A stretch of 57,661 bases of DNA, counting the filler, from Platydemus manokwari (Eukaryota): assembly GCA_037951405.1 (NCBI GenBank). It is 5 parts of 5 records of this genome, joined end to end, with 100 filler letters (N's around TTAATTAATTAA, not from the genome) between each part and the next. Parts side by side here need not be neighbours in the genome. Positions count along the whole stretch, not along the records: positions 30,524 to 47,070 come from JBBMOY011165879.1; 4 more parts are not named here. The stretch is one strand, 5' to 3'. This document shows positions 2,640-47,070 of this stretch, in pieces (position 1 is the first letter of the stretch; every line of letters starts with the position of its first letter). The notes below the pieces were generated by a model. The model was not told the origin of the DNA and ran no database searches. It saw only the letters and a list, made by a program, of their open reading frames with translations. The position numbers and the translations under genes were made by a program.

Positions 2640-3560
2640 GATTAATTAGGTTGCGCGTATATAATATAAATACTGAGAACAATAAAAATATGATAAAATA
2701 CTTTATTATAATAAAAATTAGCAAATGTGCAATGTGATTAGATTTTAGAAAGAGAAGCTGAGGGATTTATCAGTAATTAAAAACCGAGGGAGGGAACTAA
2801 GTGGTGCCCCACTGCGGTATGAAAACTAAAGAAATTTGATTTTAATACTCACAAATTTTTTGTGATTAGTCAGAAATTTTTAAAAACAAAGCCAGTCAGG
2901 GAAATTCTAATGACAAAGCACTTCTGAACAGAAAACAGTAATCGTTTGTCTCTGCCAATCAGATGCTTTGTCCTAAATAAAGAAGAAAAAATGTCCGGAA
3001 AAAAGGAAGCTGATGAAAATGCCATGTGTGATTAAAGACACTCAAAACAAGGACTGTCAGACTATATAAAATGACCGCTATTGGTCATTCAATAAAAAAA
3101 TGTAATAACCACTCTAACTGTAATACCATTTAAACACAAAAATTGAAGATCAATAGGTGCTCAAATTCTAGTGCAACGAAAACACAGTTTAATAATCAAA
3201 CCATGTTAACTCATAATCAAAATTTGGTTTTTAATTGAATCAGAATCTCAACACTGATTATACAAAGTAAATTTGAGATGAATTTCTACCTCAAATTAAT
3301 AGTCCTCTTAAAATTTCCATTCATCGATCAAACCAGACTCGTTGATACTTTCACGGATAAAGTGCACTCCTTTCGCAAATTTATTTCATTGTTTATCAGA
3401 CAGAATTATCAATGACAGTTCTCTGCCGATTCTGATAATTAAATACTTTTAAACTCTTTCGTAAAGGTTTCTCTCACATTTTTAGAAAAGGAATATGATG
3501 ATGTGTCTTTAAAAAACACCAGTGGTAACTTCATAAATTATAAACTCCTGTATGCTTGAG
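2640..3560 (+). mobile_element. Possible highly decayed LTR-retrotransposon internal fragment
   Basis: PBS-like TGGTGCCCC at ~2802 followed by stop-riddled coding-like sequence. The peptide FPFIDQTRLVDTF...FISLFIRQNYQ at ~3315-3410 weakly resembles gypsy RT. Confidence 0.25.
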
Positions 3561-30523: not shown

Positions 30524-30569
<46 letters not shown>

Positions 30570-30606
30570 TAATAATAATAATAATGATAATAATAATAAC
30601 AATAAT
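30524..30606. repeat. (AAT)n microsatellite at the contig start
   Basis: About 27 near-perfect AAT units. Confidence 0.95.
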
Positions 30607-30675
30607 ATTTATCATAATATTAAAATAATAACGAATAATAATAAAATAATAATGAATATAATTCTCTCATCACAA

Positions 30676-31028
30676 ATGGCTGAATCCAGAAAAAGTTACA
30701 CCGTAGAATATGAGATGTCGATTGTAGAAGAGTCTATAGACAAGAACCTAACCATTTTCTGCAAGGAAAAGAACCTTAACATAAAGATAGTTCATAGACG
30801 GAGATCTGCTTAAACAAACCTATGTAAGTCAGTTGCCGATGGGAACAATAAGAATAGAAAGATTAGAACGGTAATAACGCCAGCAAATAAATATTGTAAT
30901 AAAAATAAATTATGATTTTTTAAGTAATCGGTAAAAAATATATCAGCAATCCTCAAATATAAGTGCTGCCCAACTTTTTTCGACGGAAAATAATATAAAC
31001 GACCTCTTATTATAGGAAAAACACGGTA
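30676..31028 (+). mobile_element. Internally deleted pogo-like element (Brinker-type DNA-binding N-terminus plus right TIR)
   Basis: MAESRKSYTVEYEMSIVEES...EKNLNIKIVHRRR resembles POGK-type RRSY...KL.VVE..E...V.DWRK. The element ends in CCTCTTATTATAGGAAAAACACGG-TA (reverse complement TACCGTGTTTTTCCTATAATAAG), a pogo-type terminus. Confidence 0.6.
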
Positions 31029-31295
31029 TATATATTATAAAGTTTAAGATTATTCCTTACTAAAGAATATATTATTCTTTATCCAATACTCTGTATTCGT
31101 CTTCCTAACTACCACTCCTTCCAAACCCAAAATTTTTACTAAGTTTAAAAATTATAATAGAAAACTCCTATTAGCTACCAGTTTTGTTAACCACCGCCTT
31201 TTTAAAAAATATTTAATGATTTATTTTTATTTTTGCCATTATGAAGTTATTTTAATATTAATTATTTATGAAAAATCTTTCATTGGACCTTACTT

Positions 31296-32400
31296 ATGGC
31301 AAAACGAAAGTGTGTAAAGTTAACTGTTGTTGAAATAATTGAAATTTTGAAGTACATCGAATCTTATCCTGTATATTTAGATAACAGAGTAGCAGATGTT
31401 TTCTCAGGTAAATTTAAAAAAGAACTTTCAAAAAGAACTATCAGTGATATCAAAAGAAACTTGGATTTTTGATTAAAAATGCTGATCTTGAACACAAAAG
31501 TGTTTGCCGAATTCCCGTTTCAAAGTTTTATGTTTCAGACAAAGAATTGCCAGTATGAGTTGATAGACCTGAAGAAAAAGGTGCTATCATTGTGGAGAAT
31601 ATAATAAAAAAAATTAGTCCAAATAGCTGATTTAAATGCTATACAATATTTTAAATCTTCCAATGGGTGGTTAATGAAAGAACTTTGTTGAATTTAAGAA
31701 ATCTACATGGTGAATCACATACCATGTCAACCACACAACTGGAAGATTTTTTAAATGAACTTAGATTTAAAATTAAAGAATATGGACCAGAAAAAAATTA
31801 TCTTTTAAAAACTTATTCTGTCTAAATCAATATGTAAAAATGTTAGGAACGACTATAAAATATTGAAAGATAGAAACTTTGTTTTATTTTGTGTAAATAT
31901 GAATGAAAGTCATAAATGAAAACCTGCTGTAATAGGTAAAATTTCTTAATCGAGGTGTTTCAAAGGTTTATCATATTCTTCCTTGGTTAAATAATATGGT
32001 TCTTCAAATGCATGGATGGCCAATAAAATTTTTAATAAATGTTATTTAGATTTGGATTTCAAATCGCAAAAAAGGTTCTGTTGATTATAAATAACTGCAC
32101 AGCTCATAAAATACAAGTGAACTTGAAATTGATTGATGGGGTATTTTTACCTCCCAATTCAACCAGCTTATTACAGTAACTTGATTAAGGTATTACTAAA
32201 TGTTTTAAAACAATTTTTACTAGTAAGAAATTAAATGACATAATTTAAAAAATAGACTGCGGAGAATCTACATTTGCAGCTTATAAAAAATTAAATCTAA
32301 AAGACGCAATTATTTTTTTTAACACTTTCTTTGAATGAAATAAAAACTTCAACAATTTCGAACTGCTTTAGTCATGCTAAATGTACCAAAAAGGAAAGTT
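31296..32400 (+). mobile_element. Tigger/pogo (CENP-B HTH + DDE_1) transposase pseudogene
   Basis: MAKRKCVKLTVVEIIEIL, FKSSNGWL, LHGES, KDRNFVLFCVNMNESHK*KPAVIGK, SNAWM, KVLLIINNCTAHK and FLPPNSTSLLQ*LD*GI, with many stops and frameshifts. Confidence 0.9.
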
Positions 32401-32499
32401 GTCAATTTACAATATAATCAGTTGATAATTTTAATGAATTTGTTTTTAAAACACGGATACTTGATAATCAAAAATAGCTGCTAACTATGAAGTTCAAAT

Positions 32500-32620
32500 T
32501 GAAATTAAAATTCATAAAACTCAACTGAAACACTAAAACGAAAAAATAAAAATTGCAACACTTCCGTAAAACATAATGAACAATAAATAATCAGTTTTTC
32601 CCAATTTCGTTTCTGAATAG
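32500..32620 (+). repeat. Dispersed direct repeat, second copy at ~37003-37130
   Basis: AAATTCATAAAACTCAACTGAAACACT...ATGAACAATAAA...AGTTTTT(C/T)CCAATT is present in both copies. Confidence 0.8.
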
Positions 32621-35564
32621 CCACTGTGAGGTTTATTTAAAAATACCACAATTAAAATTTACATAGGATATTTTTAAAAAGTTATAATAAAAATTAATAT
32701 AGCATATTAATATTTATTAAAGGATCTTGCTTAAAAAATAATGTTAAACTCTTTGTTTTAAAATTATTAAAATTAGTAAAATTATTAAATATAAAATTTA
32801 ATTTTTGGCAAAATATTAGAGTTTGGACTTGATCATCAACTCAAATGTTCACCATCATATTAATTAAAATTAGAGGCTCTTTCCATTTTCTACATCAGGT
32901 GTCGATAGTGTTCGATTTCAAAATTTTCTTTCTTCAATTTCATCAATATCTTTAATTTTCTTTTATAATAGTTGCATTTATCTGTTATACAGTCTAGCAC
33001 CTGCATTTGTTTTTTTATTATAAAATCATTTAACATTGATTCCTGTGCCTTTCGTGTAATTTACAAAAATATTTTGATGAAGACACTGGCTGATTTATGC
33101 TTTAAAGTGTACTGAAGTTATAAAATCAATATAATGACCTTCAAAAAAATTTAAAAAAACTCCCGAAACTAACACTTTGATATATGATCCTCTTAAGATA
33201 AACCCAATGACTCATCTCAGTTGATTTCGATTACTTACACTATGATGTTTTTCAATAGAGAACAATTTTAACGTATATAAATTTATTATGTATGTAGAGA
33301 TTTCTAGAATTTACCGACTGAAACACTGATAATCCCAACAGATATTCCACCGGGCCATCGATTTTGTAGTTCTTTCAGCAAATCCGAATCAAAGGGGATA
33401 AGTAATTTTGTAATGATCACGAAGTGGACAAGATCAGGTGAAATATACGAATTCAAGAGGAGTTCTTTTCACAACAATGTTTATAAATCAAATAATAATG
33501 AGAGTATGAAGATGTAAAGATTTATTTCTCATTTCAAAATCAAATTCCAAAATTCTGGATTTTTGTTGTTCAATTTTTGTTAATTACAGTCGGTTTTCAC
33601 AGGCATGAAAATGTTCAGTGTGCACCCCGTTTTTAATCAATTATCAGGGTAAAATCTAAAAAACTTCTTTCTTTAGGAACACAATATATCAGAAAATAAA
33701 ACACTCTCATAAAAAGTATTTCTTAAGAATTTTATATTGAGGAAAATAGAGAAAAATCAATAATTTTAAAAATTCTGGAGTAAATAACAACTGTCCGAAT
33801 ATAAAAGCGAATACTTGATCTAATTATGCCCATGTATTCAGTTCTGACTCATACTTTGCATTTTTGATAACTTTGTTTTCAAAAAATAAAGCCAACTAAA
33901 AAATCAATATTTTTGAATACTTCTTTGAAAAATTTAGATTAGTGCGAATCAAGATCTGAAATCATTATTTAAAGGGTTATACCCTTGCAAAAATGGTCAC
34001 AAAAATAAAAGCAAATTAAAAGAGATTTTATCTAATTGCTATATATGGGATTTATAGCTGAATGAATTCAGAGTTAAATCAAAATGAAACATTAAAGTTT
34101 ATTTTTATTAAAACAATTAATTTAAAGCACAGATTTTTTAATTGGTAGCCTAGTGCGTATGCACTTTGGCACTTTAAAACATGAAAATATAATGTAAAAT
34201 AAAATATTTCCAACATACTTGCCTTATAATTAATTTAAACAAATTTTTTTAAAATTTTATATAATAATATGTAATTTTATATGATAATATGTACTCTATG
34301 TAATAATAATTATTAATTAGAATATAATCATTATTTATAATTAATTATCTGATTGAGCCATGATCAGTAATCATGGTCGTCACTAAATCTGTAATCCATT
34401 ATGAATTGGATTTCTTTAAGTTTTCGGACTCCAAAGGTATTTATCCTAATGACAATAATGCTTAAAAAAGTATTGCTTATCAGCGTTTTAAAATACCGTC
34501 GGGTACTGAATGGTTTTTTTCCATCTTGAATTTTATTATTTGATGAATTGGTCTCTAAATTAGTATATAAATGGATAGCTATTTCTTAGAATTGTTTTAG
34601 TCCGATCTGTCTCTGATCCCAGACACTGATGAAGTCCATTAAAAGCTGAAAGAAGACACTATCCGTATCATAAAACCACTATCATCACCACAGCCATTGT
34701 CCTTGAATGCTCGGAGAGATCAAAAAATCCTGAACCGAAGTACTGATGAGGCCCTACGGAGGACCAGAATAGGACTAATTTTTAGCAAAAAGTAAGTTTT
34801 TTTTTTTATTATCTTGACTACTTGATATTATTAATGTTACATCTTGCAACAAAAGCAGATCTTCTTTCAAATATTAATTTGTTCGAAATATCTATCTACA
34901 GAAAGAAAATCATTTGTGATAAAAATATACTAGGCGTTGTTGTAATTCCGAAAATTATAAAGTAAATTAAACACACCTGATGTACAAATTAATGAATAGT
35001 AACCTAAAATACAAATTGAAAATTATCTTATAATATTTGGATGAGCCTGAGTTATCTTGGTAAATTCTGTTTTGTAAGTTTAAATTATATTTTTGAATTC
35101 ATTAATTTAGCCATATATTTATGTTACAAAGAAAATTATAATTTGAATTTTTTCTAGAGAAAAACCTATTTTTTCATCTGTAGAATTATTTAAATATTCT
35201 ATTTCATTTAAATACGTAAAATGAAAAAAACGCGTCACCAAATGGATGTAATTGGATTTGTAATAATTGTAAGTTCCCTTTTGATCGTTCACGTTCAGCT
35301 TAATTAGTCGTTGTTGGATTTCAAGTTATCTTCTTACAACAAAGAAGATTATTTATAGCTTTATATAAAATTTTAAAATGCAGTTAAAAAATATAATTTT
35401 ATGTATTTACTTTTTTAAAATCAAAATCTATAGATGTTTAGATGATATGGATTGTTCAAGCATCGATTTAAAACTAAGGAAGCTTATAAAACACTAATAA
35501 AGATATAGATTATTGATTTTCAGAAAAATATAAAGTGTTGGTTGTAATTAATAAACAGGCTTCA

Positions 35565-35800
35565 GCTAGTCATAGTAGATCCAAGTCGAGGATTTCTTGG
35601 TCACAATTCTCCCGTTGAAATTATGTCTTTCATTTGCTTTTCGCTCAATTATTGTCTTTGTTTCTCCGTTATGTTTTTTTCTATCCTGACTCATTCCTGT
35701 TCATAAATTAAAATTCCGTTGTTAAAGTTATTGACTGAGATACTCCGGTGGTATATATTGTTGCCATCTTTTTCAAGTGCTGATTGTATTTATTACGTTC
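35565..35800 (-). mobile_element. Highly decayed mariner transposase fragment
   Basis: Minus-strand E*VRIEKNITEKQRQ...RIVTKKSSTWIYYD resembles mariner WVPHELTEKQ...RIVTGDETWIYYD. Confidence 0.45.
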
Positions 35801-38800
35801 CTTTGAAGTCCTTACAACAACTATAAAATAAATTGTGAGTTTTACTATAGCATAACTCAATGTATGTTGACATTTTAGAAATTCCAGTTAAGGTTGTAAT
35901 AGATTTCTTTAATAGAAAGTTGGATATTTTTTACATTGAGTGTATATGTTTTTCTCTATCTGTACCTTGTTAAATGGTTTATTTTCATCAATTTTTATAA
36001 AGAAAATTTAACAGAATCTATATGGTACAGCATATTTAATTTAGTTTGTGATACATAGTCTAGGGAAAGCAATTAATAAGGGGTTCCAATAATAATAAAC
36101 AACAATTTCAACCAATACATGCAATGTTCAACTGATATTGAAGGCGGATGTGAATAAAATAATATTATTTTTTATAGTTTACTACAAAATAATCGTGATA
36201 TTACCTTGTTTCAGGTAAAATCTGATAACGGAGAAAAAATAATGAGGATATTCAATACTAAACAAAATTAAGAAAGGCTTTGTGTTGATTTCGAATATAC
36301 ATCTCCGAAAAATGAGCCAAACCCTTATGATAACAATAACAGCGTTCATATTTCATTGATTTTGTTCATTTATTTTGATGATATTAATATTATATATAAA
36401 ATCTCACTCGGTAAGAAATTTCCCCATTATTTTCCACCTAGATAATTGATTGGCACATAACTCTAGTTTCTATATTTGATTTTTAAATCTTTCATTTTTA
36501 GATTAGAATTAGCTAATTTATAAGATAAAAAACAAGAAATATTAGTATAAGTTTTAGAATTAGAATTTCGAAATATATTAAGTTTGACATTAACAAGTAA
36601 AAGTTTTAAAAAGTTTTGTGATGATAATGGTATTATTTTCTTTAGATAAAGGGAATAAAGAATGATTTGAATTTCCTTTAAGATTCATGTGATATTGAAT
36701 AAAACAGGTTAGAAACCCTTTTACAGCTGTTGATTAAAAAAATGACTGTTTGATATTTTATAAAACACCTATCAAAAACCAACTGATTTTCTTTTCATTT
36801 TTAATTGACATTGTACCGAATACTCTACTACTTATCTACATAAAAATCTCTAATTCATCTATCTTCTTTACATCCTCTTTATATGTCCTCTATATTCTCA
36901 ACTTCTTCCTCTTTCTTTTTCATAATTTTAAAAACATTGAAACAAATCTTTAAAAATTTAATTCATTTCAAATTTTCGCAACTATGATGACCAAAACTTA
37001 CATTAAATTCATAAAACTCAACTGAAACACTGTAATGAAAGAAATCAATTTCTCATGAAAATAAGCGAAATTGTAACAATTCCAAAAACCATTATGAACA
37101 ATAAAAAATGAGTTTTTTCCAATTCAGTTTTTAAAAAGTCTCAAAGTATTATAATGTTGGGTTGTCTAGGATTGTTTTTATTGATGTTACTGGTAAACTC
37201 AACAGCGTGAGTTCTTCTGTATGATTTTAAGATATTGATGTAAATCAAATATTCCACTAATCCAATATACTTTTATTTATTATGACAAATCGATTTACAA
37301 ATTGAGTCAAACTATTAAATCAAATTAGGTAATTTTGTCAAACAAATCGGTTTAGTGATCTTACGGGGAACGTGAGAACTTATTGAGTTACCTTAATGAT
37401 TTCATTATAGATTTTAAAATATTGATTCCGAAGATGGGATCCTTCAGAATTCAAAGAGTTAGTATTTATTTTATTACTTATTAGAAGCTACTAAATTATT
37501 ATTTCTTTACCGTTTTTCAAACGTTTTTCAGTTTTAAAAAATTTTTCACTCATGAACTTTAAGCTTCACATTTTTAAGAGTGAATTGTAATGGAAATCCA
37601 TCAACTTGTATAAATGCTGAGATTCGGTACTTTATAAGTAGGATTTCCCATCAATATTGTAAATTGTAAACATTTTTATTACTTTAACCCTTCATTATTT
37701 ATCATTTTAAAAGTTTCTTAACTTTAAAATTCTATAAATTTGGCTAAGCTCATATATTCTTATCATATAAATTATCGATATTACAAATAAATTATTAAAT
37801 TTTTTTTATTCTTTTCTTATTTCTTATTGTGATTGCTTGATTAAATTTTATTAATATATTTTTATTTAAAAAATTAAATTCAACTTTTTACAAATAAAAA
37901 ATCATAAAAAATATCACAGTTGAATCAATAAAAAAATGTCATCATAAAGAACTCAAACAAACAAAAATTTATCATAAATTCAATAATAAGTTCAGTGTCA
38001 CAAAGTTACGGATAAATGGCTAGGAGGAATTGATTCTGGATTGTTGAAAAATGAATTTGAATTCGGAGCAGTACCCCGGGAACTCTTGTTCACTATCAGA
38101 CATCGAAATCCACACTCCTGTTTCTCATACCCCGAATCTCCCAATTTGGGTTTGATTTTATTTAGTTTGGTTTCACTGGTGCGGTGGGTTTCTGCTTTTT
38201 AAAAAGCGACGCATTGGGCTTTTTAAATTTATTTGATTGGAATGAAGTCGCTTGTTGTTGTACAGATTAGGATGATGTTGCTGGGTATTCTGCAAATCCC
38301 ACAATTCTGCTCTTCCATTCATGATATGAACTAATGGTAATTGTAGCTTTTTCTTTCTCGCTCTCCCCACTATCTAAATATTGTACTAGCCGGTCAATGC
38401 TTAAAAATATGAAATAATTTAGAATATCACACTACGTGGAATCACTAAATCACAGGCGAAAAAATTAGAAATTAGAGAGTCATGTTCTGAGATAAAATAT
38501 GGCTGCCAAACGCCTATTTGCACATAAATTAAATCCAAACTTCTTGTTCAATTATCTTCAAAATAATTCCTTTAACTTTTGAGAAATTCGAGTAATAAAA
38601 TTTTATGATTTAATATTTAATAATATAAACAAAAACTAAACTTTAAACCTTTGAATGATATAATATGATTTTAAAATAATCGTTTTAAACAAAAGTAAAA
38701 TTGATAAATTCGAAGAATAATTTATTAACTTAGAGCCAAATGGAGAATGTCTATGTCAACTCAAACAACAAGTCCATTCACTCAATTGAACTTTTAGAAA

Positions 38801-39121
38801 ATTCTCTATTAACAATCTATTTACAATCAAAATATAAAATGATTGTTTTTGAAAATTTTAAAGTGATTATAGGTGATAAATTTGATTTGCACTTCTCTAA
38901 TAATCTTTCATAGAGTTAATTATTATAATTGAATAACAAAGGTCTCCTAATAATGTTAGAAAACTTTATCAATAAAAGTTTTCATGTATTACATTTATAT
39001 TATCATTATATTATTGATTATTCATAGAAAATTTCGAGACATCATGTTTTAATATTTCAAAAGTATATCAAAAAATGTGATTCACAAATTTTATTTGTTT
39101 TACAAATCAAGAATATTCTAT

Positions 39122-41866
39122 TCAACCCTGACATGATCGACAATTTTCTTTGTTTATAAGGGAGCATGTGCTAGCTTCTGATTCAAGAGAAAGTTTCTCG
39201 ATAATTTCTTTTTCACTGATATTTCCATTGCCATGTAATGATTCATACATCTGTTTTACTTTATCACTTAAAACCAAAGAATTTGCTCTACTTTTATCAA
39301 TTGTAAATTGAATTGGGTCAGCAGCTGGTCTGGTTCGCAAGTAATACATACCTGTTTTCAATCCCTATAAGCAATATTTAAAAACAATATATCAATAATA
39401 TCACAAAACAATTACCTTCTTCCAAGCAAGAAAATGCAATGTTGTCAACGTTTGATAATTTGGAGCTGCAACATGTAAATTCATACTTTGACTTTGATCA
39501 ATAAATGGAGCTCGATCCGCAGCCATATTAATTATAGTAGTTTGAGGAATCTCCCATACTGTTTTATACAATTCCTTCAATTGATCCGGTAAGCCATTAA
39601 TATTTTGAACAGATCCTTTGTTGGCAATAATAGCATTCGACATATCATCAGACCAAACACCCAATTGAATTAAATCTTCAATCAAATATCGATTTAGGAC
39701 AACATATTCTCCACTCAACACTCTTCTGATATAAATGTTTGACGTGAATGGTTCAAAACATTCATTATTTCCCAAAATCTGAGATGTACTTGCTGTTGGC
39801 ATAGGAGCGACCAATAAACTATTTCTTACACCGTATCTAAAGTAAAATATAAATATATTAAATCAATAAATAAATATAATAAACAAACTTTGCAATATCT
39901 GATCTTAATTGTGGCCAATCAAGTTTATCGCTGCATTGCACATTCCACATATCTGGTTGTAAAATACCTCTACTAACCGGAGAACCTTCGTATGATTCAT
40001 AAGTTCCAAATTCTTTCGCTAATTTGCAAGACTTTCGAAGAGCACTGAAATAAATTGTTTCGAATATTCTTTTGTTTAATTCCATTGCTTCTTTACTTTC
40101 AAATGGAAAGCGTAGCAAAGCGAAAACATCGGCCAATCCTTGAACACCGATTCCAATAGGGCGATGTCTAAAATTAGAATTTTTCGCTTCTACCAATGGA
40201 TAATAGTTGATATCGATAATTTTATTGAGATTGTTCGTTATCACTTCAGTTACCTGAGATAAACATTATCAATTATTAATAATAATTTTTATCATTAATT
40301 CTAACCTTAACAAGTGAATCAAAATCGAATGTTTTCTTTTTTCGATCAACAAATTTTGTTAACGAAATCGAAGCTAAATTGCAAACAGCCACTTCATCAG
40401 GCGCACTATATTCAATGATTTCAGTACATAAATTACTGCATTTGATTGTTCCCAGATGTTGATGATTAGATTTACTATTACACGAATCTTTATACAACAT
40501 GTATGGAGTACCGGTCTCGATTTGTGAGTCAAGTATTTCTTTCCACAAAGTTCTGGCACTCATGGTTTTTACACCTTTTCCTTGACTTTCATATGATTCG
40601 TAAAGTTTTTCAAAATTATCACCCCAACAATCAAATAATCCAGTACAAATACTGGGTTCCATCAGTGTCCATGAACCGTTGTCCTTAACTCGTTTCATAA
40701 ATAAATCTGGTATCCATAGTGCGGTAAAGATGTCTCTTGCTTTCTTTGATTCATCACCGTGATTCTTTCTAACATTCAAAAATTCCAAAATATCAGGATG
40801 CCATGGCTCAATATAAATTGCAAATGATCCCGGTCTACGAGTACCTTTGTTTACATTTCGTGATCTATTATTAAAAAGCTGTATGACTGAAGTGAGACCT
40901 TTGAGATCTTCACTTGCAAGTTCATTTTGTAAATCCTTCGATTTGATGCAATGAGCATTCAATCCGATACCACCATCATGTTCGGCAATCGTTGCACAAT
41001 CATTCATTGTTCGGTGTATTTCTTCTGTGTTATCACCTCTCATTGTTAAAAGAAAACAACTTGAAAGCTGTGGTCGTTTTGTTCCAGAATTAAACAATGT
41101 TGGTGTCGCATGAATAAACCACTTTTCCGACATCAAGTTATAAGTCTAATCAATGATAATTATTGATGGAATAATATTTTAAATTAATTAAATTACCTCT
41201 ATAGCACTATCGATATCAGTTCTATGTATTCCAATGGCAACTCTCATAAACATATGTTGTGGTCGTTCTACAATTTTATTATTGATTTTTAAAAGATATA
41301 CAGCTTCTAAGGTCTAAATAAATATTAAAGTCAGCAATAGAATTTAAATAAAATTACTTTAATTCCGAAATATTCAATATAATAATCACGATCATAATTC
41401 AGAACATTCTCCAATTTAGTAGCATTATTTCGAATACATTCATATACTTGATCATCAATATTATTCACTGATTCACCTGTGATTGGATCGACGGCATTAT
41501 ATAAGTCGGTGATGACATCGATAAACTTGGATTTTGTTTCTTTATGTAATTTAGATACAACTATTCTTCCAGCTAAATGTAAATATTCGATATGTATCTT
41601 TACCATGCTAGCACATGTTTCAGATGCCAAAGTATCCAATTCGACCGTTGAAACACCAGGATATAGACCCCTCATTATCTTATGACATATTTTATCCTAT
41701 ATTATAAATTTATTAAAATGTTATTATTAAGAATATTATCAATTACAATATCAACGTTTTGGCGTTGTGATGAATTGCATAATTTCAATAGTCTATTTCT
41801 AATTTTTTCAAAATCAACTCCTTGTTTCAAACCATTTCTCTTGATAATTTCATGTACTTTTGACAT
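39122..41866 (-). CDS. RRM1: Ribonucleoside-diphosphate reductase large subunit (class Ia alpha), complete, 7 exons
   Basis: Exons 41866-41747, 41696-41358, 41313-41197, 41145-40306, 40253-39889, 39835-39416 and 39365-39122 splice in frame. ATP cone (IIKRNG...[10 protein letters not shown]), [40 protein letters not shown] and C-terminal CRSC. Confidence 0.97.
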
Positions 41867-44414
41867 ATTGATGAAATAATTATAATGTTTCAAATAATTA
41901 TTCAAACTAATTATATTTCAAAATAATTAATACCTGTTATTTTTAATTTTATTTCTATATATTATTTTATTAATTATGAAATTATGGTTTATGGAGAAGA
42001 ATTCATCAACCAATTTTTACAAAAATGAAAATCTTCTTTTAAAATTTACTTATTTTTTAAAATCTATAAAATTATAATCAAAAAATTAGAAAAAAAATAG
42101 TTTCTCAAAATAAATAATATCTTTTGACCACAATACATATAGAAAATAGATGCATATATAGTTTGTTGAATAATTCACTTAAATGGATTTATTTTCCTTT
42201 CCTTAAAAAAGAAAATTCATAATAATTCCTTGATAAATATATTAAAATTTCCTTATATAGCAACCAAAGAAAATATAAATTTACAGAACCTTTTGAACTG
42301 GTAAACTTTAGACATCCAATGTAATATTTGGAAATTTAAAGTGATACCACATGTTGATGTTTGGAATTTTTTCTTCCATTTTATTATTTTTTTAAATTAT
42401 AAATTATAATCATTTCATTCAGAAAACGTTGTTGGTCATGCGAACTTTTTTTTCATTGAGTTTAATTTATGAGCTTTTGATTTAACGAGATGACAAAGCA
42501 ACTCTATTTTTACAATCTTTTTGAAAAATATCGCAGATGAATTGCATCACTATTTCTAAGTTCTCTTTTTATAGGGAAATTATTCTTCATTTTAGAAGCA
42601 TACTCTATCCATCTTCTTCCTAATTTAAATTTAAATAATATTTACTTCCTATATTATTAACCATTTTCAATTCGACTTCGATCATTTGAAACACAAATAT
42701 CTATATTTCAGATAATCTTCATGATTTTTAAGTATTTTTTCACTCTTATTTTGATTATGAATCTTACAACAAACAATTCATTAATAATTTTGTTGGGGTT
42801 TCAAGAAAGTGACCAGTATTAACAATGACAATTTCGTATATAATAATAACAGTATTCAATGTATAAAGTATAATGTTTGAAATATTTATGTATATGGTAG
42901 TAATCTATAATATCTATAATTCGATTGTACTTAGTTTTATAACGATTTTCAAATGTTAGAAAATGTAGCGTTCATCGACGCCTGATGTTGATAAATTTTT
43001 TATGATATTGATGAAAAATCGAAACATAGTTGTTATGCATGAAACAACTATTTCGTTATTTTATCAACATATTTTTGATACATTGCATTTAGCTTTTTTA
43101 TACTATAGTGAAATCGTGTAACAATTTTTATAATCGCATTGTAGCGATAATTTTTATGACTACACTTCGGAGAGAAAATAAATATATTAATTATTATGTA
43201 ATAATTTATATTATAATATTTATGGAATAAATTTCATATAGAACGGTTTAATGGCAAATAAAACAATAGGAAAATTTAAGGGAACTTTATAAATTAATAA
43301 GGAATATTTTTCTAAAAATTGTTTTTAAATATCTTTATTTGGGAGGATTAAAAGCGCCGATTTCCAAACCATATAAATAACAGTTGCAATCAATACAACT
43401 CGCCCATTTTACCGAAACCACTAGAGAATGTGAAGTCAAATTCAACATCAACTAGAATACGTGAAGATACATATTGCCATTAGAAGCTTCCGAGTTATAT
43501 GCCCTTCGATTTTTGCCATTGAATTGATAAAGTTTTAAGTGAGTTAGATTGTTCTGTAAAATCATAATCTGTATTATATATCGTATTACGCGTTATTGTC
43601 ATATTATCGAGCTGTGTCTCAAAACATCTTGAGGTAAAGGTTCTGCTTTTAGAGTTGAAGTACGCAACCGTTTTGTTTCCAGAAGTTGTAGGTGTAACAG
43701 TGTAGGACATTTTTATTAGCTGTATAGTGTAGTATTAAACAAAACATTTTTTTTATAATTGTATAATTGTATTGTTGTTGTAACATTTAATAGTAAATAA
43801 ACGTTATTGTAAACGTGAATCATTGTGTTGTTGATTAGATAGGATATAGGATAAAATTATATAATTTTGAGACTGATTGAGAATAAATTGTATAAATTGT
43901 CGAGACTGATATAAGTAAATTTTATATAAATTGGATCATTGCTGCCTATCGTACTATCTCCATATAGCATTGATAGCGAGGTGAAGAAAGAGGATTATAA
44001 GATAAGGTTTGATTGGTATACATTAAGGGGTTGGTCAGAGCTCACAGAGACTGATCAAGTCGGCATTGATCCACAATAGATTGTAAAATACGGAGACTTA
44101 TAAAGAAAAACCAAATTATCCCAAAAATTCAACAATTTTATTCACAATTCCAGAAGCGTCTACGGTTAATAAACTTCAAAGAAGAATAAAACCAGACATT
44201 AGTGAGGGAATGAAACCTTATAAATAGGAAGAGTATGCGTTTTTATAAATAATTTATGGTTTTACAATTATTAGATTTTACTTAGTCTTCATATGACGGT
44301 GAGTCATACTGAATGTGTACTAGGCACATAAGCTCGGAATCCCTTATGCAATCGATGTTATGTATTAGCCCTTCTATATCGCAGTCTATCTTCGTATGTA
44401 GAAAAATGTGCATA

Positions 44415-44625
44415 TAATAATTGCGGTCACTGCCTTATATAGAAAAGTGTGACTCATTCGTAGACATTCTCTGCGAATATTTATTTAATGCAGAGTATAT
44501 ATCTTAATTGCACTGAAATTTAGTGTGACAGAGGGAAATTCTTCTGCATTTAATTGCATAGCTATTTTATTTTATTTAACATTTGACTATTTTTTGATTC
44601 TGGCTGAATATTTTATTTATTGCGA
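44415..44625 (-). repeat. Third, more diverged copy of the repeat block A family
   Basis: GTGACAGAGGGAAATTCTTCTGCATTTAATTGCA...TTTTATTTTATTTAA matches 8020-8075 and the reverse complement of ~6940-7095. Confidence 0.75.
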
Positions 44626-45375
44626 TGTGTTTCGTGATTGTGATTGTTGTTCAACCTATCAGTCCCTAATTCAATAATTTTATTATTGTAGATCAATGTC
44701 GTCTTATCAGCCACACGTGGTTCTAACCAAACCTAAGACACAATTTTAAACCTTATTATTATTTGTTTTCTTCACCATTCAATATTTATTATGATGTCCA
44801 ACATTTGTTAGCATTTATTCGTGGTTCAATCTCTATTGTCCTAGAAGCCCAACTAATACCGGGGTAGTGAATGAATTCCATAAAAACATTGTCATTATTT
44901 CAGGAAACATTACCATTACTTCCTAATAACTAAAAAATTTCTTCAGCCTCATGAGCACGAAATTTCCACAGAAACAGAAAAATTAACTAATTCAATCAAT
45001 AATATACTTATTCTAATTCTTTATTTATTGAATTTTAGAAAATTTCCAAATAAATATTGTAAATTAATTAATTTCCTAGAGAAATTTTTTAATATATAAC
45101 ATATAAAACAGCTATAAAACAAATACTCAAACAATTGAAATAATATTATAAAACCATATTTTAGATTAATAAAATTCTTAATAATTGAGATAGTATGTTC
45201 ACATAATAAGAATAATTCTTGCTGAAATATTCAGGGCCAATATATCATATATGTTTAGAAGATATGCAAAAGTTATAAATTCAAAAGAACAATGAAATTT
45301 TTTTGAAATTAAATTAGAATCTAAATTGTTTAATCGAACTAAAACTTCATTATTATATAACCTTTCATTTGAAAC

Positions 45376-46807
45376 ATGTCTGAAAAGAACGTGCTTTTAC
45401 AAAATGCCGCTGATAGATTGAGAATTTTAAGCATAAAGTCAACAAATGCTTCGAATTCTGGGTTGGAATTATATTTTTTATTGGTTTAATTTAAAAAATT
45501 ATTTAGACATCCAACTTCATGTGCATCTGCAGCAGAAATAATGTCTGTTTTGTTCCTCGACGTGATGCGTTACCATGTTGACGATCCTCGAAATCCAAAC
45601 AATGATAGATTTGTTTTATCCAAGGTAAAACATTATTATTCTGAAGTACATATTAGACATTTGAATTGTCTAGGGACACGCAGCACCGATATTATATGCA
45701 GCTTGGGTTGAAGCTGGATTGTTGCATCCAGATGAAATTCTTAATTTGCGTAAGATTTCATCTGATCTCGAGGGACACCCAACTCCTGTGAGTTTTAATA
45801 CATTTATCTTAATGTTCTTGTTAATGGGTTTATTACGTAATAATGTTTATTGATGGGTTTGAAGTTATCAAAGAGAAATATTAATCAAGATCCCAATTTT
45901 AATATTTATTTAAGTTTACAGAATTATTCATTATTTTGAAGTATTTTAAAATTTGAAATATTGTTGTAAAGGATATCGAAATAATTATTATACAATCGTT
46001 ATGAATTTCTATGATACGGCACGCGCGAAAATATGAAATGTAAACATATTTACCCACAAATGAAACCACAAACGATTACACAATAGCTATTAGTTGTGTG
46101 TAATCATTTATTTATCTTTCAGAGGCTACCATTCGTAGATGTTGCAACGGGTTCGTTAGGTCAAGGATTGAGTTGTGCTGCTGGAATGGCATATACGGCT
46201 AAATATTTCGATAAAGCTCCATATAGAGTGTATTGTTTGCTCGGTGATGGAGAATCAGCTGAAGGATCAGTTTGGGAGGCTTTATCTTTCAGTGGTATTT
46301 ATCAGCTTGATAATTTGGTGGCCATTTTTGACATCAACCGTCTGGGACAGAGCCAACCGACTGCATTTCAACATAACATTGAAATATATGAAAAGCGAGT
46401 GGCATCTTTTGGGTAATTATTTGCAATATTAGCATTCCGACGGCAATTAATATAAATATTAATGAAGATGGCACGTGATTGTGGTGGATGGGCACGATGT
46501 TTCTAGCTTGATCGAGGCGTTTGAGCAGGCATCACACACCACTGGGAAGCCAACTGCAATTATAGCCAAAACATTTAAGGGGGCAGGGTTTGAAGGTATA
46601 TCGGATGAAGATAATTGGCATGGAAAGGCTTTGGGTAATAAAGCTGCTGCTGTTATTGGTCATTTGGAGGATAAAATAAGGAAATCTTCGGTTGGTGGGG
46701 CTGGTGATTGTACTTTGAAACCGAAATTACCCAGCAATACTTTGCAACCGGCCGATTCGGAACCGATTAAGATGTTGGAGAAGCCCAATTATAAGATTGG
46801 ACAAATG
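45376..46807 (+). CDS. TKT: Transketolase, N-terminal ThDP-binding half; remainder absent from this contig
   Basis: Exons ~45376-45461, 45507-45624, 45674-45787, 46123-46412 and 46468-46807. [54 protein letters not shown]...[14 protein letters not shown] (animal type). Confidence 0.96.
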
Positions 46808-46827
46808 GTAAAGGCTTGAATTTTATA

Positions 46828-46851
46828 TATAATAATAATAATTATTATTAT

Positions 46852-46889
<38 letters not shown>

Positions 46890-47020
46890 ATTATGTATTA
46901 TTGACATTTATAATTGGCTAATTTTGATATTTTTGCTATAACAATGATTATATAAATAAATAGTATAATATAATGATAATTATGGAGCTAAATAATAAGA
47001 ATAATAATAATAATAATCAA
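46828..47020. repeat. (AAT)n/(ATT)n low-complexity tract before the contig end
   Basis: Runs of AAT, then ATT, then AAT triplets. Confidence 0.85.
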
Positions 47021-47070
47021 CCATTAATAAGAATGACAAAATTCCGAAAATAATATAATTCTAATAAAAT

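Follow-up and report, generated by a model that had tools for sequence, protein, structure and literature searches.

The window, a stretch of 57,661 nucleotides (filler included) from Platydemus manokwari (GenBank assembly GCA_037951405.1) made up of five parts joined end to end, carries a gene for the large subunit (R1, or alpha) of ribonucleotide reductase (RNR) in the part derived from JBBMOY011165879.1 (positions 30,524 to 47,070). The protein encoded on the minus strand at 39122-41866, hereafter called window R1, combines a full set of catalytic features with a remodelled specificity site (s-site), the site at which deoxynucleoside triphosphate (dNTP) effectors act. The reading that we favour, with confidence little better than even, is that of a real, intact and selectively maintained R1 in which specificity control is altered and which is probably one of several copies. 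To our knowledge, allosteric specificity control of RNR balances the four dNTPs in all cellular life.

Gene structure and the remodelled segment

The gene model was built from the minus strand of 38900-42300 by joining pieces of open reading frame (ORF), and consists of seven exons and six introns of 44-52 nt, all with GT..AG borders. The 814-codon frame is open, with no internal stop, frameshift or splice defect, in line with the original prediction that the gene splices to an intact ORF. Pfam matches were distributed over the ATP-cone (exons 1-2), Ribonuc_red_lgN (exons 3-4) and Ribonuc_red_lgC (exons 4-6, with E-values of 4e-90, 7e-39 and 2e-48 for exons 4, 5 and 6, respectively); the ATP-cone scores of 23.4 bits (exon 1) and 16.9 bits (exon 2) fall under the cut-off of 25.8 bits only because an intron splits the domain. 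The top matches in the PDB for exons 2, 4 and 6, obtained with phmmer, were human RRM1 and yeast Rnr1, and the alignment of exon 4 to chain 3hnc (E 2.7e-108) showed the human sequence given in the original prediction to be correct.

The redox and radical-transfer motifs that had been listed as retained, together with the ELDT of the ATP-cone, could all be read in the spliced protein (ELDT at residue 59, SSCFL at 220, SNLCTEI at 429, AVCNLAS at 445, GMYYLR at 739 and CRSC at 809), and PMPTAST is present as well. Residue D61 of the ATP-cone, equivalent to human D57, is retained, and the catalytic residues C218, N427, C429, E431 and C444 (human numbering, which is used for all substitutions below) match human RRM1 in the alignment. 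Conservation of the YY pair and of the C-terminal CxxC extends to L082, a contig from a near-identical relative that encodes P0271, carries exons 4-7 and ends in ...CESCQV. With lgN and lgC domains, catalytic residues, YY pair, CxxC and ATP-cone all present, the locus is, as judged from its sequence, a complete gene for a eukaryotic class Ia RNR alpha subunit, lacking none of the catalytic features.

The segment that departs from this pattern lies between SSCFL and RPG, at residues 220-298 (40828-41064), in agreement with the interval of 40825-41065 originally given for it. Window R1 was aligned with 50 diverse full-length representatives from a search of 1.84 billion proteins, and exon 4 was additionally surveyed across 198 R1s, that is, window R1 and 197 others. 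Ten of ten conserved s-site residues (S227, S242, K243, R256, I262, G267, S269, P274, Y285 and Q288) differ in window R1, and eleven departures were recorded across the segment (S227N, G230E, S242A, K243E, R256K, I262N, G267E, S269L, P274S, L276I and Q288K). Four substitutions are near the effector (K243E, A245D, R256K and S227N). Loop 1, with R256K, I262N, G264L, T265A, G267E and S269L, has one glycine against the canonical four and a net charge of -1 against +1 or +2, so that its replacement, as originally described, is upheld; for the segment as a whole the net charge is 0 against +2 to +5, and the number of glycines 7 against 11-13. Lysine occupies position 243 in 85% of the 197 other R1s, and glutamate, as in window R1, in one of them; glutamine occupies position 288 in 99.5% of the other R1s surveyed, where window R1 has lysine. 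The alignments thus bear out the claims that K243 has become E and R256 K, that Q288 is lost and that R293 is kept. Also retained in the segment are D226, the GGIG strand, the hydrophobic pattern of both interface helices, FNN, R284 and RPG.

For loop 2 the original prediction went too far. A loop one residue shorter than in human RRM1 had been taken as an oddity, but the short form is common among natural R1s (for example DQGGKR.G or NQGGRRPG in the 50-representative alignment); the loop is therefore within the natural range of length, it keeps R293 and the RPG motif, and "rewritten" is too strong a word for it. The departures in loop 2 that we count as real are Q288K and Y285N. The coordinates of all features of the gene are collected in Table 1.

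Table 1. Features of the RNR large-subunit gene, in positions of the window
Feature	Position	Strand	Basis
Whole RNR large-subunit (R1/alpha) gene, start to stop codon, 814 aa	39122-41866	-	Spliced model, Pfam and PDB matches
Exon 1 (aa 1-40), start of ATP-cone	41747-41866	-	ATP-cone match, E 8.8e-5
Exon 2 (aa 41-153), remainder of ATP-cone with ELDT	41358-41696	-	Yeast Rnr1 residues 38-149, E 2.4e-27
Exon 3 (aa 154-192), all-alpha domain	41197-41313	-	Ribonuc_red_lgN, E 6e-10; same boundaries in relative L001
Exon 4 (aa 193-472), first half of barrel with s-site segment and catalytic loop	40306-41145	-	Human RRM1 residues 189-466, E 2.7e-108
Remodelled specificity-site/dimer-interface segment (aa 220-298: helix A, loop 1, helix B, loop 2)	40828-41064	-	Identity trough, unique substitutions
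Codon 247 (E), equivalent of K243	40981-40983	-	Survey of other R1s
Loop 1 (aa 260-275), in place of canonical R..GS.I.GTNG.S.G	40897-40944	-	Composition and substitutions
Loop 2 (aa 289-298), Y285N, D287N, Q288K; R293 retained	40828-40857	-	Survey of other R1s
SNLCTEI (aa 429-435), catalytic Asn/Cys/Glu	40417-40437	-	Direct reading; identical in human RRM1 alignment
Exon 5 (aa 473-594, final codon split by intron)	39889-40253	-	Ribonuc_red_lgC, E 7e-39; 75% identity to L082
Exon 6 (aa 594-734), contains PMPTAST	39416-39836	-	Human RRM1 residues 591-729, E 1.4e-58; 84% identity to L082
Exon 7 (aa 735-814 and stop), GMYYLR and C-terminal CRSC	39122-39364	-	Direct reading; tail conserved in L082
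GMYYLR, radical-transfer tyrosines (aa 739-744)	39335-39352	-	Read from sequence
C-terminal CRSC (aa 809-812)	39131-39142	-	Read from sequence

Distribution of the divergence along the protein and among relatives

The divergence of window R1 is localised, as originally predicted, and not uniform along the protein. When columns at least 85% conserved were taken as conserved, the alignment of 50 representatives held 165 such columns, and window R1 deviated at 13 of them; 11 of the 13 fell within residues 220-299, which account for 24 conserved columns, and two in the remaining 141 (Fisher p 4e-9). The exon-4 survey gave a similar picture, with window R1 as the top outlier of the 198 R1s, deviating at 19 of 39 columns in the segment and at 4 of 88 elsewhere. 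The median for the other 197 was a single deviation in the segment, and the R1s ranked next also diverged outside it.

Clearly nearest to window R1 in a word search were two metagenomic ORFs, P0151 (69% identity) and P0153 (67%), which form a clade with it at 100% support, have exon boundaries in common with it, and carry fully canonical segments. Identity between window R1 and these two relatives is 77-83% in the regions flanking the segment, 75-84% over the remainder of exons 4-6 and 46% within the segment, whereas P0151 and P0153 are 76% identical to each other within the segment; relative to vertebrate (bird) RRM1, segment identity is 81% for P0151, the nearest relative, and 39% for window R1. 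Sliding identity to L082, otherwise 63-93% along exons 4-6, dropped to 37-53% precisely over residues 213-302, and the only other stretch of low identity to this contig was the naturally variable C-terminal linker. Substitutions unique to the branch of window R1 were found at 28 of 79 sites inside the segment and at 12 of 171 outside (odds ratio 7.3, p 5e-8), as against 5/79 and 9/171 for P0151 and 4/79 and 13/171 for P0153. Non-synonymous distances agree with these counts: in the segment they were 0.39-0.43 for window R1 and 0.14 between P0151 and P0153, while outside the segment they were 0.15-0.18 for all three pairs. Only non-synonymous distances were compared with the relatives, and no ratios to synonymous change are given, since synonymous sites were saturated (pS 0.78-1.1). 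The sequence comparisons taken together confirm that the divergence of the segment is real, confined to one module and specific to this lineage.

Outside the segment, the substitution rate of window R1 equals that of its canonical relatives, which argues against pseudogenisation, as the original prediction had maintained. Stops, frameshifts and broken splice sites are all lacking, the segment agrees with its exon in base composition and keeps its fold elements in the AlphaFold model described below, and constraint is not uniformly relaxed, so that the evidence from the sequence speaks against decay of the gene. Two origins of the segment were considered and rejected. A compensated frameshift does not account for it, the other frames of loop 1 giving unrelated or stopped peptides and GGIG, FNN and RPG being in frame; foreign or converted DNA is likewise rejected, the GC content and third-position GC content of the segment being equal to those of the remainder of the exon and canonical R1s being its best matches among proteins of 154-490 aa.

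No protein sharing the segment was found among the 28 candidates from a word search restricted to it (residues 24-106; proteins of 154-490 aa), the best of which was 48% identical and canonical. A scan of metagenome loci returned nothing more than 61% identical, the closest representative in the search of 1.84 billion proteins was 57% identical, and a profile search seeded with a full-length bacterial-type R1 and the exons of window R1 and L082 recovered only kin of the seed protein. In the R1 tree, no placement was obtained for the clade of window R1.

Several further observations were made on the relatives. Introns 4 and 5 are at identical positions in L082, and introns 2 and 3 are shared by L001, the JGI metagenome contig carrying P0153; intron 6 of window R1 (39365-39415, between WKK and GLK) is absent from L082 (2087-2752). 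Third-position GC is 26% in window R1, and 37% and 79% in its two nearest relatives. L001 ends in an Illumina adapter at 983-1017 (AGATCGGAAGAGC...), and the last residues of P0153 are therefore artefactual. At its end, L082 has an exact direct repeat, 55 nt long, of part of its exon 6 (3110-3164 against 2291-2345), which could be either a misassembly or a second, tandem copy downstream.

Changed positions in the light of known reductases

A near-saturating mutator screen of yeast RNR1 yielded hardly any alleles outside residues 226 to 291; about one half of the residues hit lie at or near the S-site, where they touch the bound effector, and others on the helices of the dimer interface (PMC6326808). 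Among the mutator alleles are S242T, K243E, A245V, R256H, I262T/V, T265A, G267C, S269P, P274L, M275T, A283V and Y285C (PMC6326808); window R1 departs from the consensus at each of these twelve positions, and two of its substitutions, K243E and T265A, recur unchanged in the yeast set. On its own, the rnr1-K243E allele has a strong mutator effect and goes with a very high level of dGTP (PMC6326808). In loop 2, for which roles of Y285, D287, Q288 and R293 have been described, Q288 contacts every substrate except GDP; the yeast Q288A mutant has dCTP at about 8% of normal and purine dNTPs in excess, and no viable haploids were obtained with Q288E, D287N or D287A (PMC2896522). Single substitutions in the segment thus suffice in yeast to distort dNTP pools and raise mutation rates (PMC6326808, PMC2896522). 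The positions changed in window R1 are the same as in these alleles, Q288A included, but in yeast they were made in the laboratory, singly or in pairs, and carry a fitness cost, whereas window R1 holds a dozen such changes in a natural, conserved gene, where they presumably coexist with compensation or a second copy. From this overlap we infer that effector binding or its read-out is altered in window R1, which might escape dNTP control, have a fixed substrate preference or dimerise differently (PMC6326808, PMC2896522).

Human RRM1 and yeast Rnr1 (PDB 3hnc, 1zyz and 2cvx) have the same order of domains as window R1 (ATP-cone, all-alpha domain, ten-stranded barrel) and share with it the catalytic Cys, Asn and Glu, the YY pair and the C-terminal CxxC, and the best chains of the human enzyme share about 57% identity with exon 4. 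Window R1 is unlike both in K243E, R256K, I262N and Q288K and in its acidic loop 1 with one glycine. Regulation of specificity is found in all RNR classes and is lacking only in some enzymes of the Herpesviridae (PMC3267527, the review by Hofer et al.), which provide a precedent for a class I large subunit without effector-tuned choice of substrate. The herpesvirus enzymes are viral, however, with no sequence relationship seen to window R1, in which a loss of regulation would be deduced from the changed residues.

Unusual s-sites were also noted in three other cases. P0012, from a EukProt transcriptome, is without R256 and K243; a cluster represented by P0039, with a protein of Cichorium intybus among its members, shows K243E together with Q288E; and in P0177 loop 1 alone is rewritten. 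Like window R1, these proteins depart from the s-site consensus at several positions, but they belong to unrelated lineages, most of them deviate at 6-16 of the 88 columns outside the segment, against 4 of 88 in window R1, and none has the segment sequence of window R1. Remodelling of the s-site is therefore rare but not unique.

Probable sibling copies, competing explanations and flanking features

The gene was found in a single public run, X1 (of unrecorded kind), which contains 65% of the words sampled from it. Contigs of X1 were aligned to the gene at 80% likeness, and 85 of them could be placed: 22 at 99% identity or above, 13 at 95-99%, 25 at 90-95% and 25 below 90%. All 30 of 30 gene bins were covered, with a depth of 42-44 over the segment. 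At least three or four versions of the gene, with identities of 80-99% and similar depth, are present in X1. Distinct versions had depths of 9.4-14.2, rising to about 38 where versions collapse, a pattern that fits copies in one genome better than a mixture of species and suggests paralogs, homeologs or very divergent haplotypes within one genome. The source of X1 may be a polyploid, hybrid or highly heterozygous genome, or else a mixed sample. Among the 40 best-supported differences between versions, 27 were synonymous and 13 non-synonymous, and the rough ratio of 0.15 points to purifying selection among the versions.

One X1 contig of 1826 nt is collinear with exons 3-5 at about 82%; its intron 3 differs by indels, and its intron 4 is replaced. 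In this contig the stretch corresponding to 40837-41078 (exon-4 residues 23-103, the s-site segment) is swapped for 245 non-aligning letters, against 242 here, and the replacement is thus one codon longer, as is canonical loop 2. At codons 236-238 (H236, R237 and T238, of the variant type), X1 sibling contigs differ only synonymously, so that close siblings carry at least part of the variant segment; taken with the different residues found in X1 at codons 231 and 234, this indicates that the segment kept changing recently. Window R1 probably has siblings, one of them with a segment of a different kind. The original suggestion of a possible paralog is strengthened by the presence of several diverged versions, one with its segment replaced, although these may come from one genome or from a mixed sample. 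A known parallel to several copies is yeast Rnr3, a second alpha gene able to back up the main one; Rnr3 forms mixed dimers and keeps a canonical s-site.

In the favoured reading, a lineage-specific burst of substitutions has struck the 80 residues that form the specificity site and the alpha-alpha dimer interface, while the catalytic site, radical path, ATP-cone and C-terminal redox cysteines have stayed under normal constraint. K243E reverses the charge of a triphosphate-binding lysine, Q288K alters the substrate-reading glutamine, and an acidic, glycine-poor stretch stands in for the glycine-rich loop 1. Ribonucleotide reduction would continue with dNTP/ATP effectors bound more weakly or read differently, and the choice of substrate would be biased or less tunable than in a canonical R1; the other R1 copy, with a segment one codon longer, could supply normal regulation or form mixed dimers. 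The original interpretation thus stands as regards intact catalysis and a confined, lineage-specific divergence, its account of loop 2 being overstated.

A number of points weigh against this reading. D226 and R293 are kept and R256K is a conservative change, so that, judged by these residues, effector binding could persist and may be altered and not lost, and position 243 is Q in 23 of 197 natural R1s. The AlphaFold model of exon 4 (mean predicted local distance difference test, pLDDT, of 83.5) preserves helix A, the GGIG strand and helix B, has a template modelling (TM) score of 0.85 against human RRM1 3hnc, and is of low confidence only in loop 1 (pLDDT 72-79) and loop 2, both of them flexible in canonical enzymes too; it was, however, guided by canonical homologues and is not informative on ligand binding. 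Among the public runs searched, no RNA run containing the gene was found. X1, in which no more than 65% of the words of the gene are present, could come from a mixed sample or from a different strain, and at codons 231 and 234 all X1 contigs have the canonical S and G where window R1 has N and E. The flanks of the 1826-nt contig, at about 82%, are near the 80% cut-off, and that its 245-letter replacement is canonical is a guess from length only.

The same observations bear on three other accounts. Window R1 might be the sole R1 of an organism whose lineage rewired or largely gave up specificity control, the X1 versions belonging to other strains or species. The canonical substitution rate outside the segment, expected of an essential single-copy enzyme, and the retention of the ATP-cone and all catalytic parts would fit this account, as would the difference between window R1 and its closest X1 contigs, which, with 65% of the gene's words in X1, do not simply come from the same individual. 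We regard it as rather unlikely, given that the near-equal depths of the X1 versions (9.4-14.2) and their rise to about 38 on collapse are better explained by copies in one genome, and that in yeast even one change at these positions raises mutation or fails to sustain growth, so that a dozen in a sole copy would have to be extensively compensated. A redundant duplicate in early decay, in which regulatory constraint was lost first and the segment is drifting, seems improbable. Sibling copies probably do exist, conserved glycines and charges have been stripped with no obvious new motif, and, if the 82% contig is canonical, amino-acid change in the segment is large relative to silent divergence and compatible with near-neutral drift; but decay would be expected to relax the whole protein, yet 84 of 88 conserved columns are kept outside the segment, compared with 20 of 39 within it, the 814 codons are free of stops and frameshifts and their splice sites are sound, and the variant codons differ only synonymously between copies. 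A segment that is 46% identical to its relatives and still retains D226, GGIG, R293 and the helix pattern is, moreover, not drifting freely.

That the segment is an artefact of assembly or sequencing, or a chimeric consensus encoded by no single molecule, is very improbable. The many near-identical and diverged versions in X1 could have led an assembler to mix haplotypes, and no X1 contig (0) has the letters of window R1 at codons 231 and 234. Against this, the frame is open, the composition of the segment matches the exon, 22 X1 contigs match at 99% or above with all 30 bins covered and a depth of 42-44 over the segment, and X1 siblings also carry the variant-type H, R and T; errors, moreover, would not yield 28 in-frame changes restricted to one functional module.

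Window R1 is a natural experiment in how far an s-site can be rebuilt with catalysis kept, and could reveal on which residues the reading of effectors and dimerisation really depend. Whether duplication of the gene allows the regulation of RNR to diversify, or whether a bias in pools can feed back on genome composition, are further questions that it could answer. As one of several copies with a canonical partner, it would be a more modest case, of subfunctionalised RNR alpha subunits. A bolder and decidedly doubtful proposal is that window R1 is the working or dominant R1 of its lineage, no longer follows the otherwise universal dNTP-effector specificity code, and has shaped the mutation spectrum through a bias in dNTP pools. 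It would then have no known precedent among cellular RNRs. The AT-richness of the genome here (about 26% GC) and the exon third-position GC of 26%, against 37% and 79% in the relatives with canonical sites, would fit such a bias.

The sequence piece carrying the gene for window R1 contained no R2 gene, and Rfam and tRNA scans of the piece gave no matches. Next to the R1 gene in the piece, at 45541-46819 on the plus strand, is a transketolase gene of human/animal type with at least four exons and short introns, cut by the edge of the piece; it scores 149 bits with human TKT and about 39 with yeast TKT. This type of transketolase, together with introns of about 50 nt, suggests an animal with small introns. 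Broken ORFs resembling a pogo/Tigger-type transposase (DDE_1, E 1.7e-4, with an HTH-like ORF upstream) at 31296-32179 on the plus strand probably represent, by their sequence, a decayed DNA transposon. Both ends of the piece (30524-30640 and about 46850-46900) carry long microsatellites of the trinucleotides ATA/ATT.

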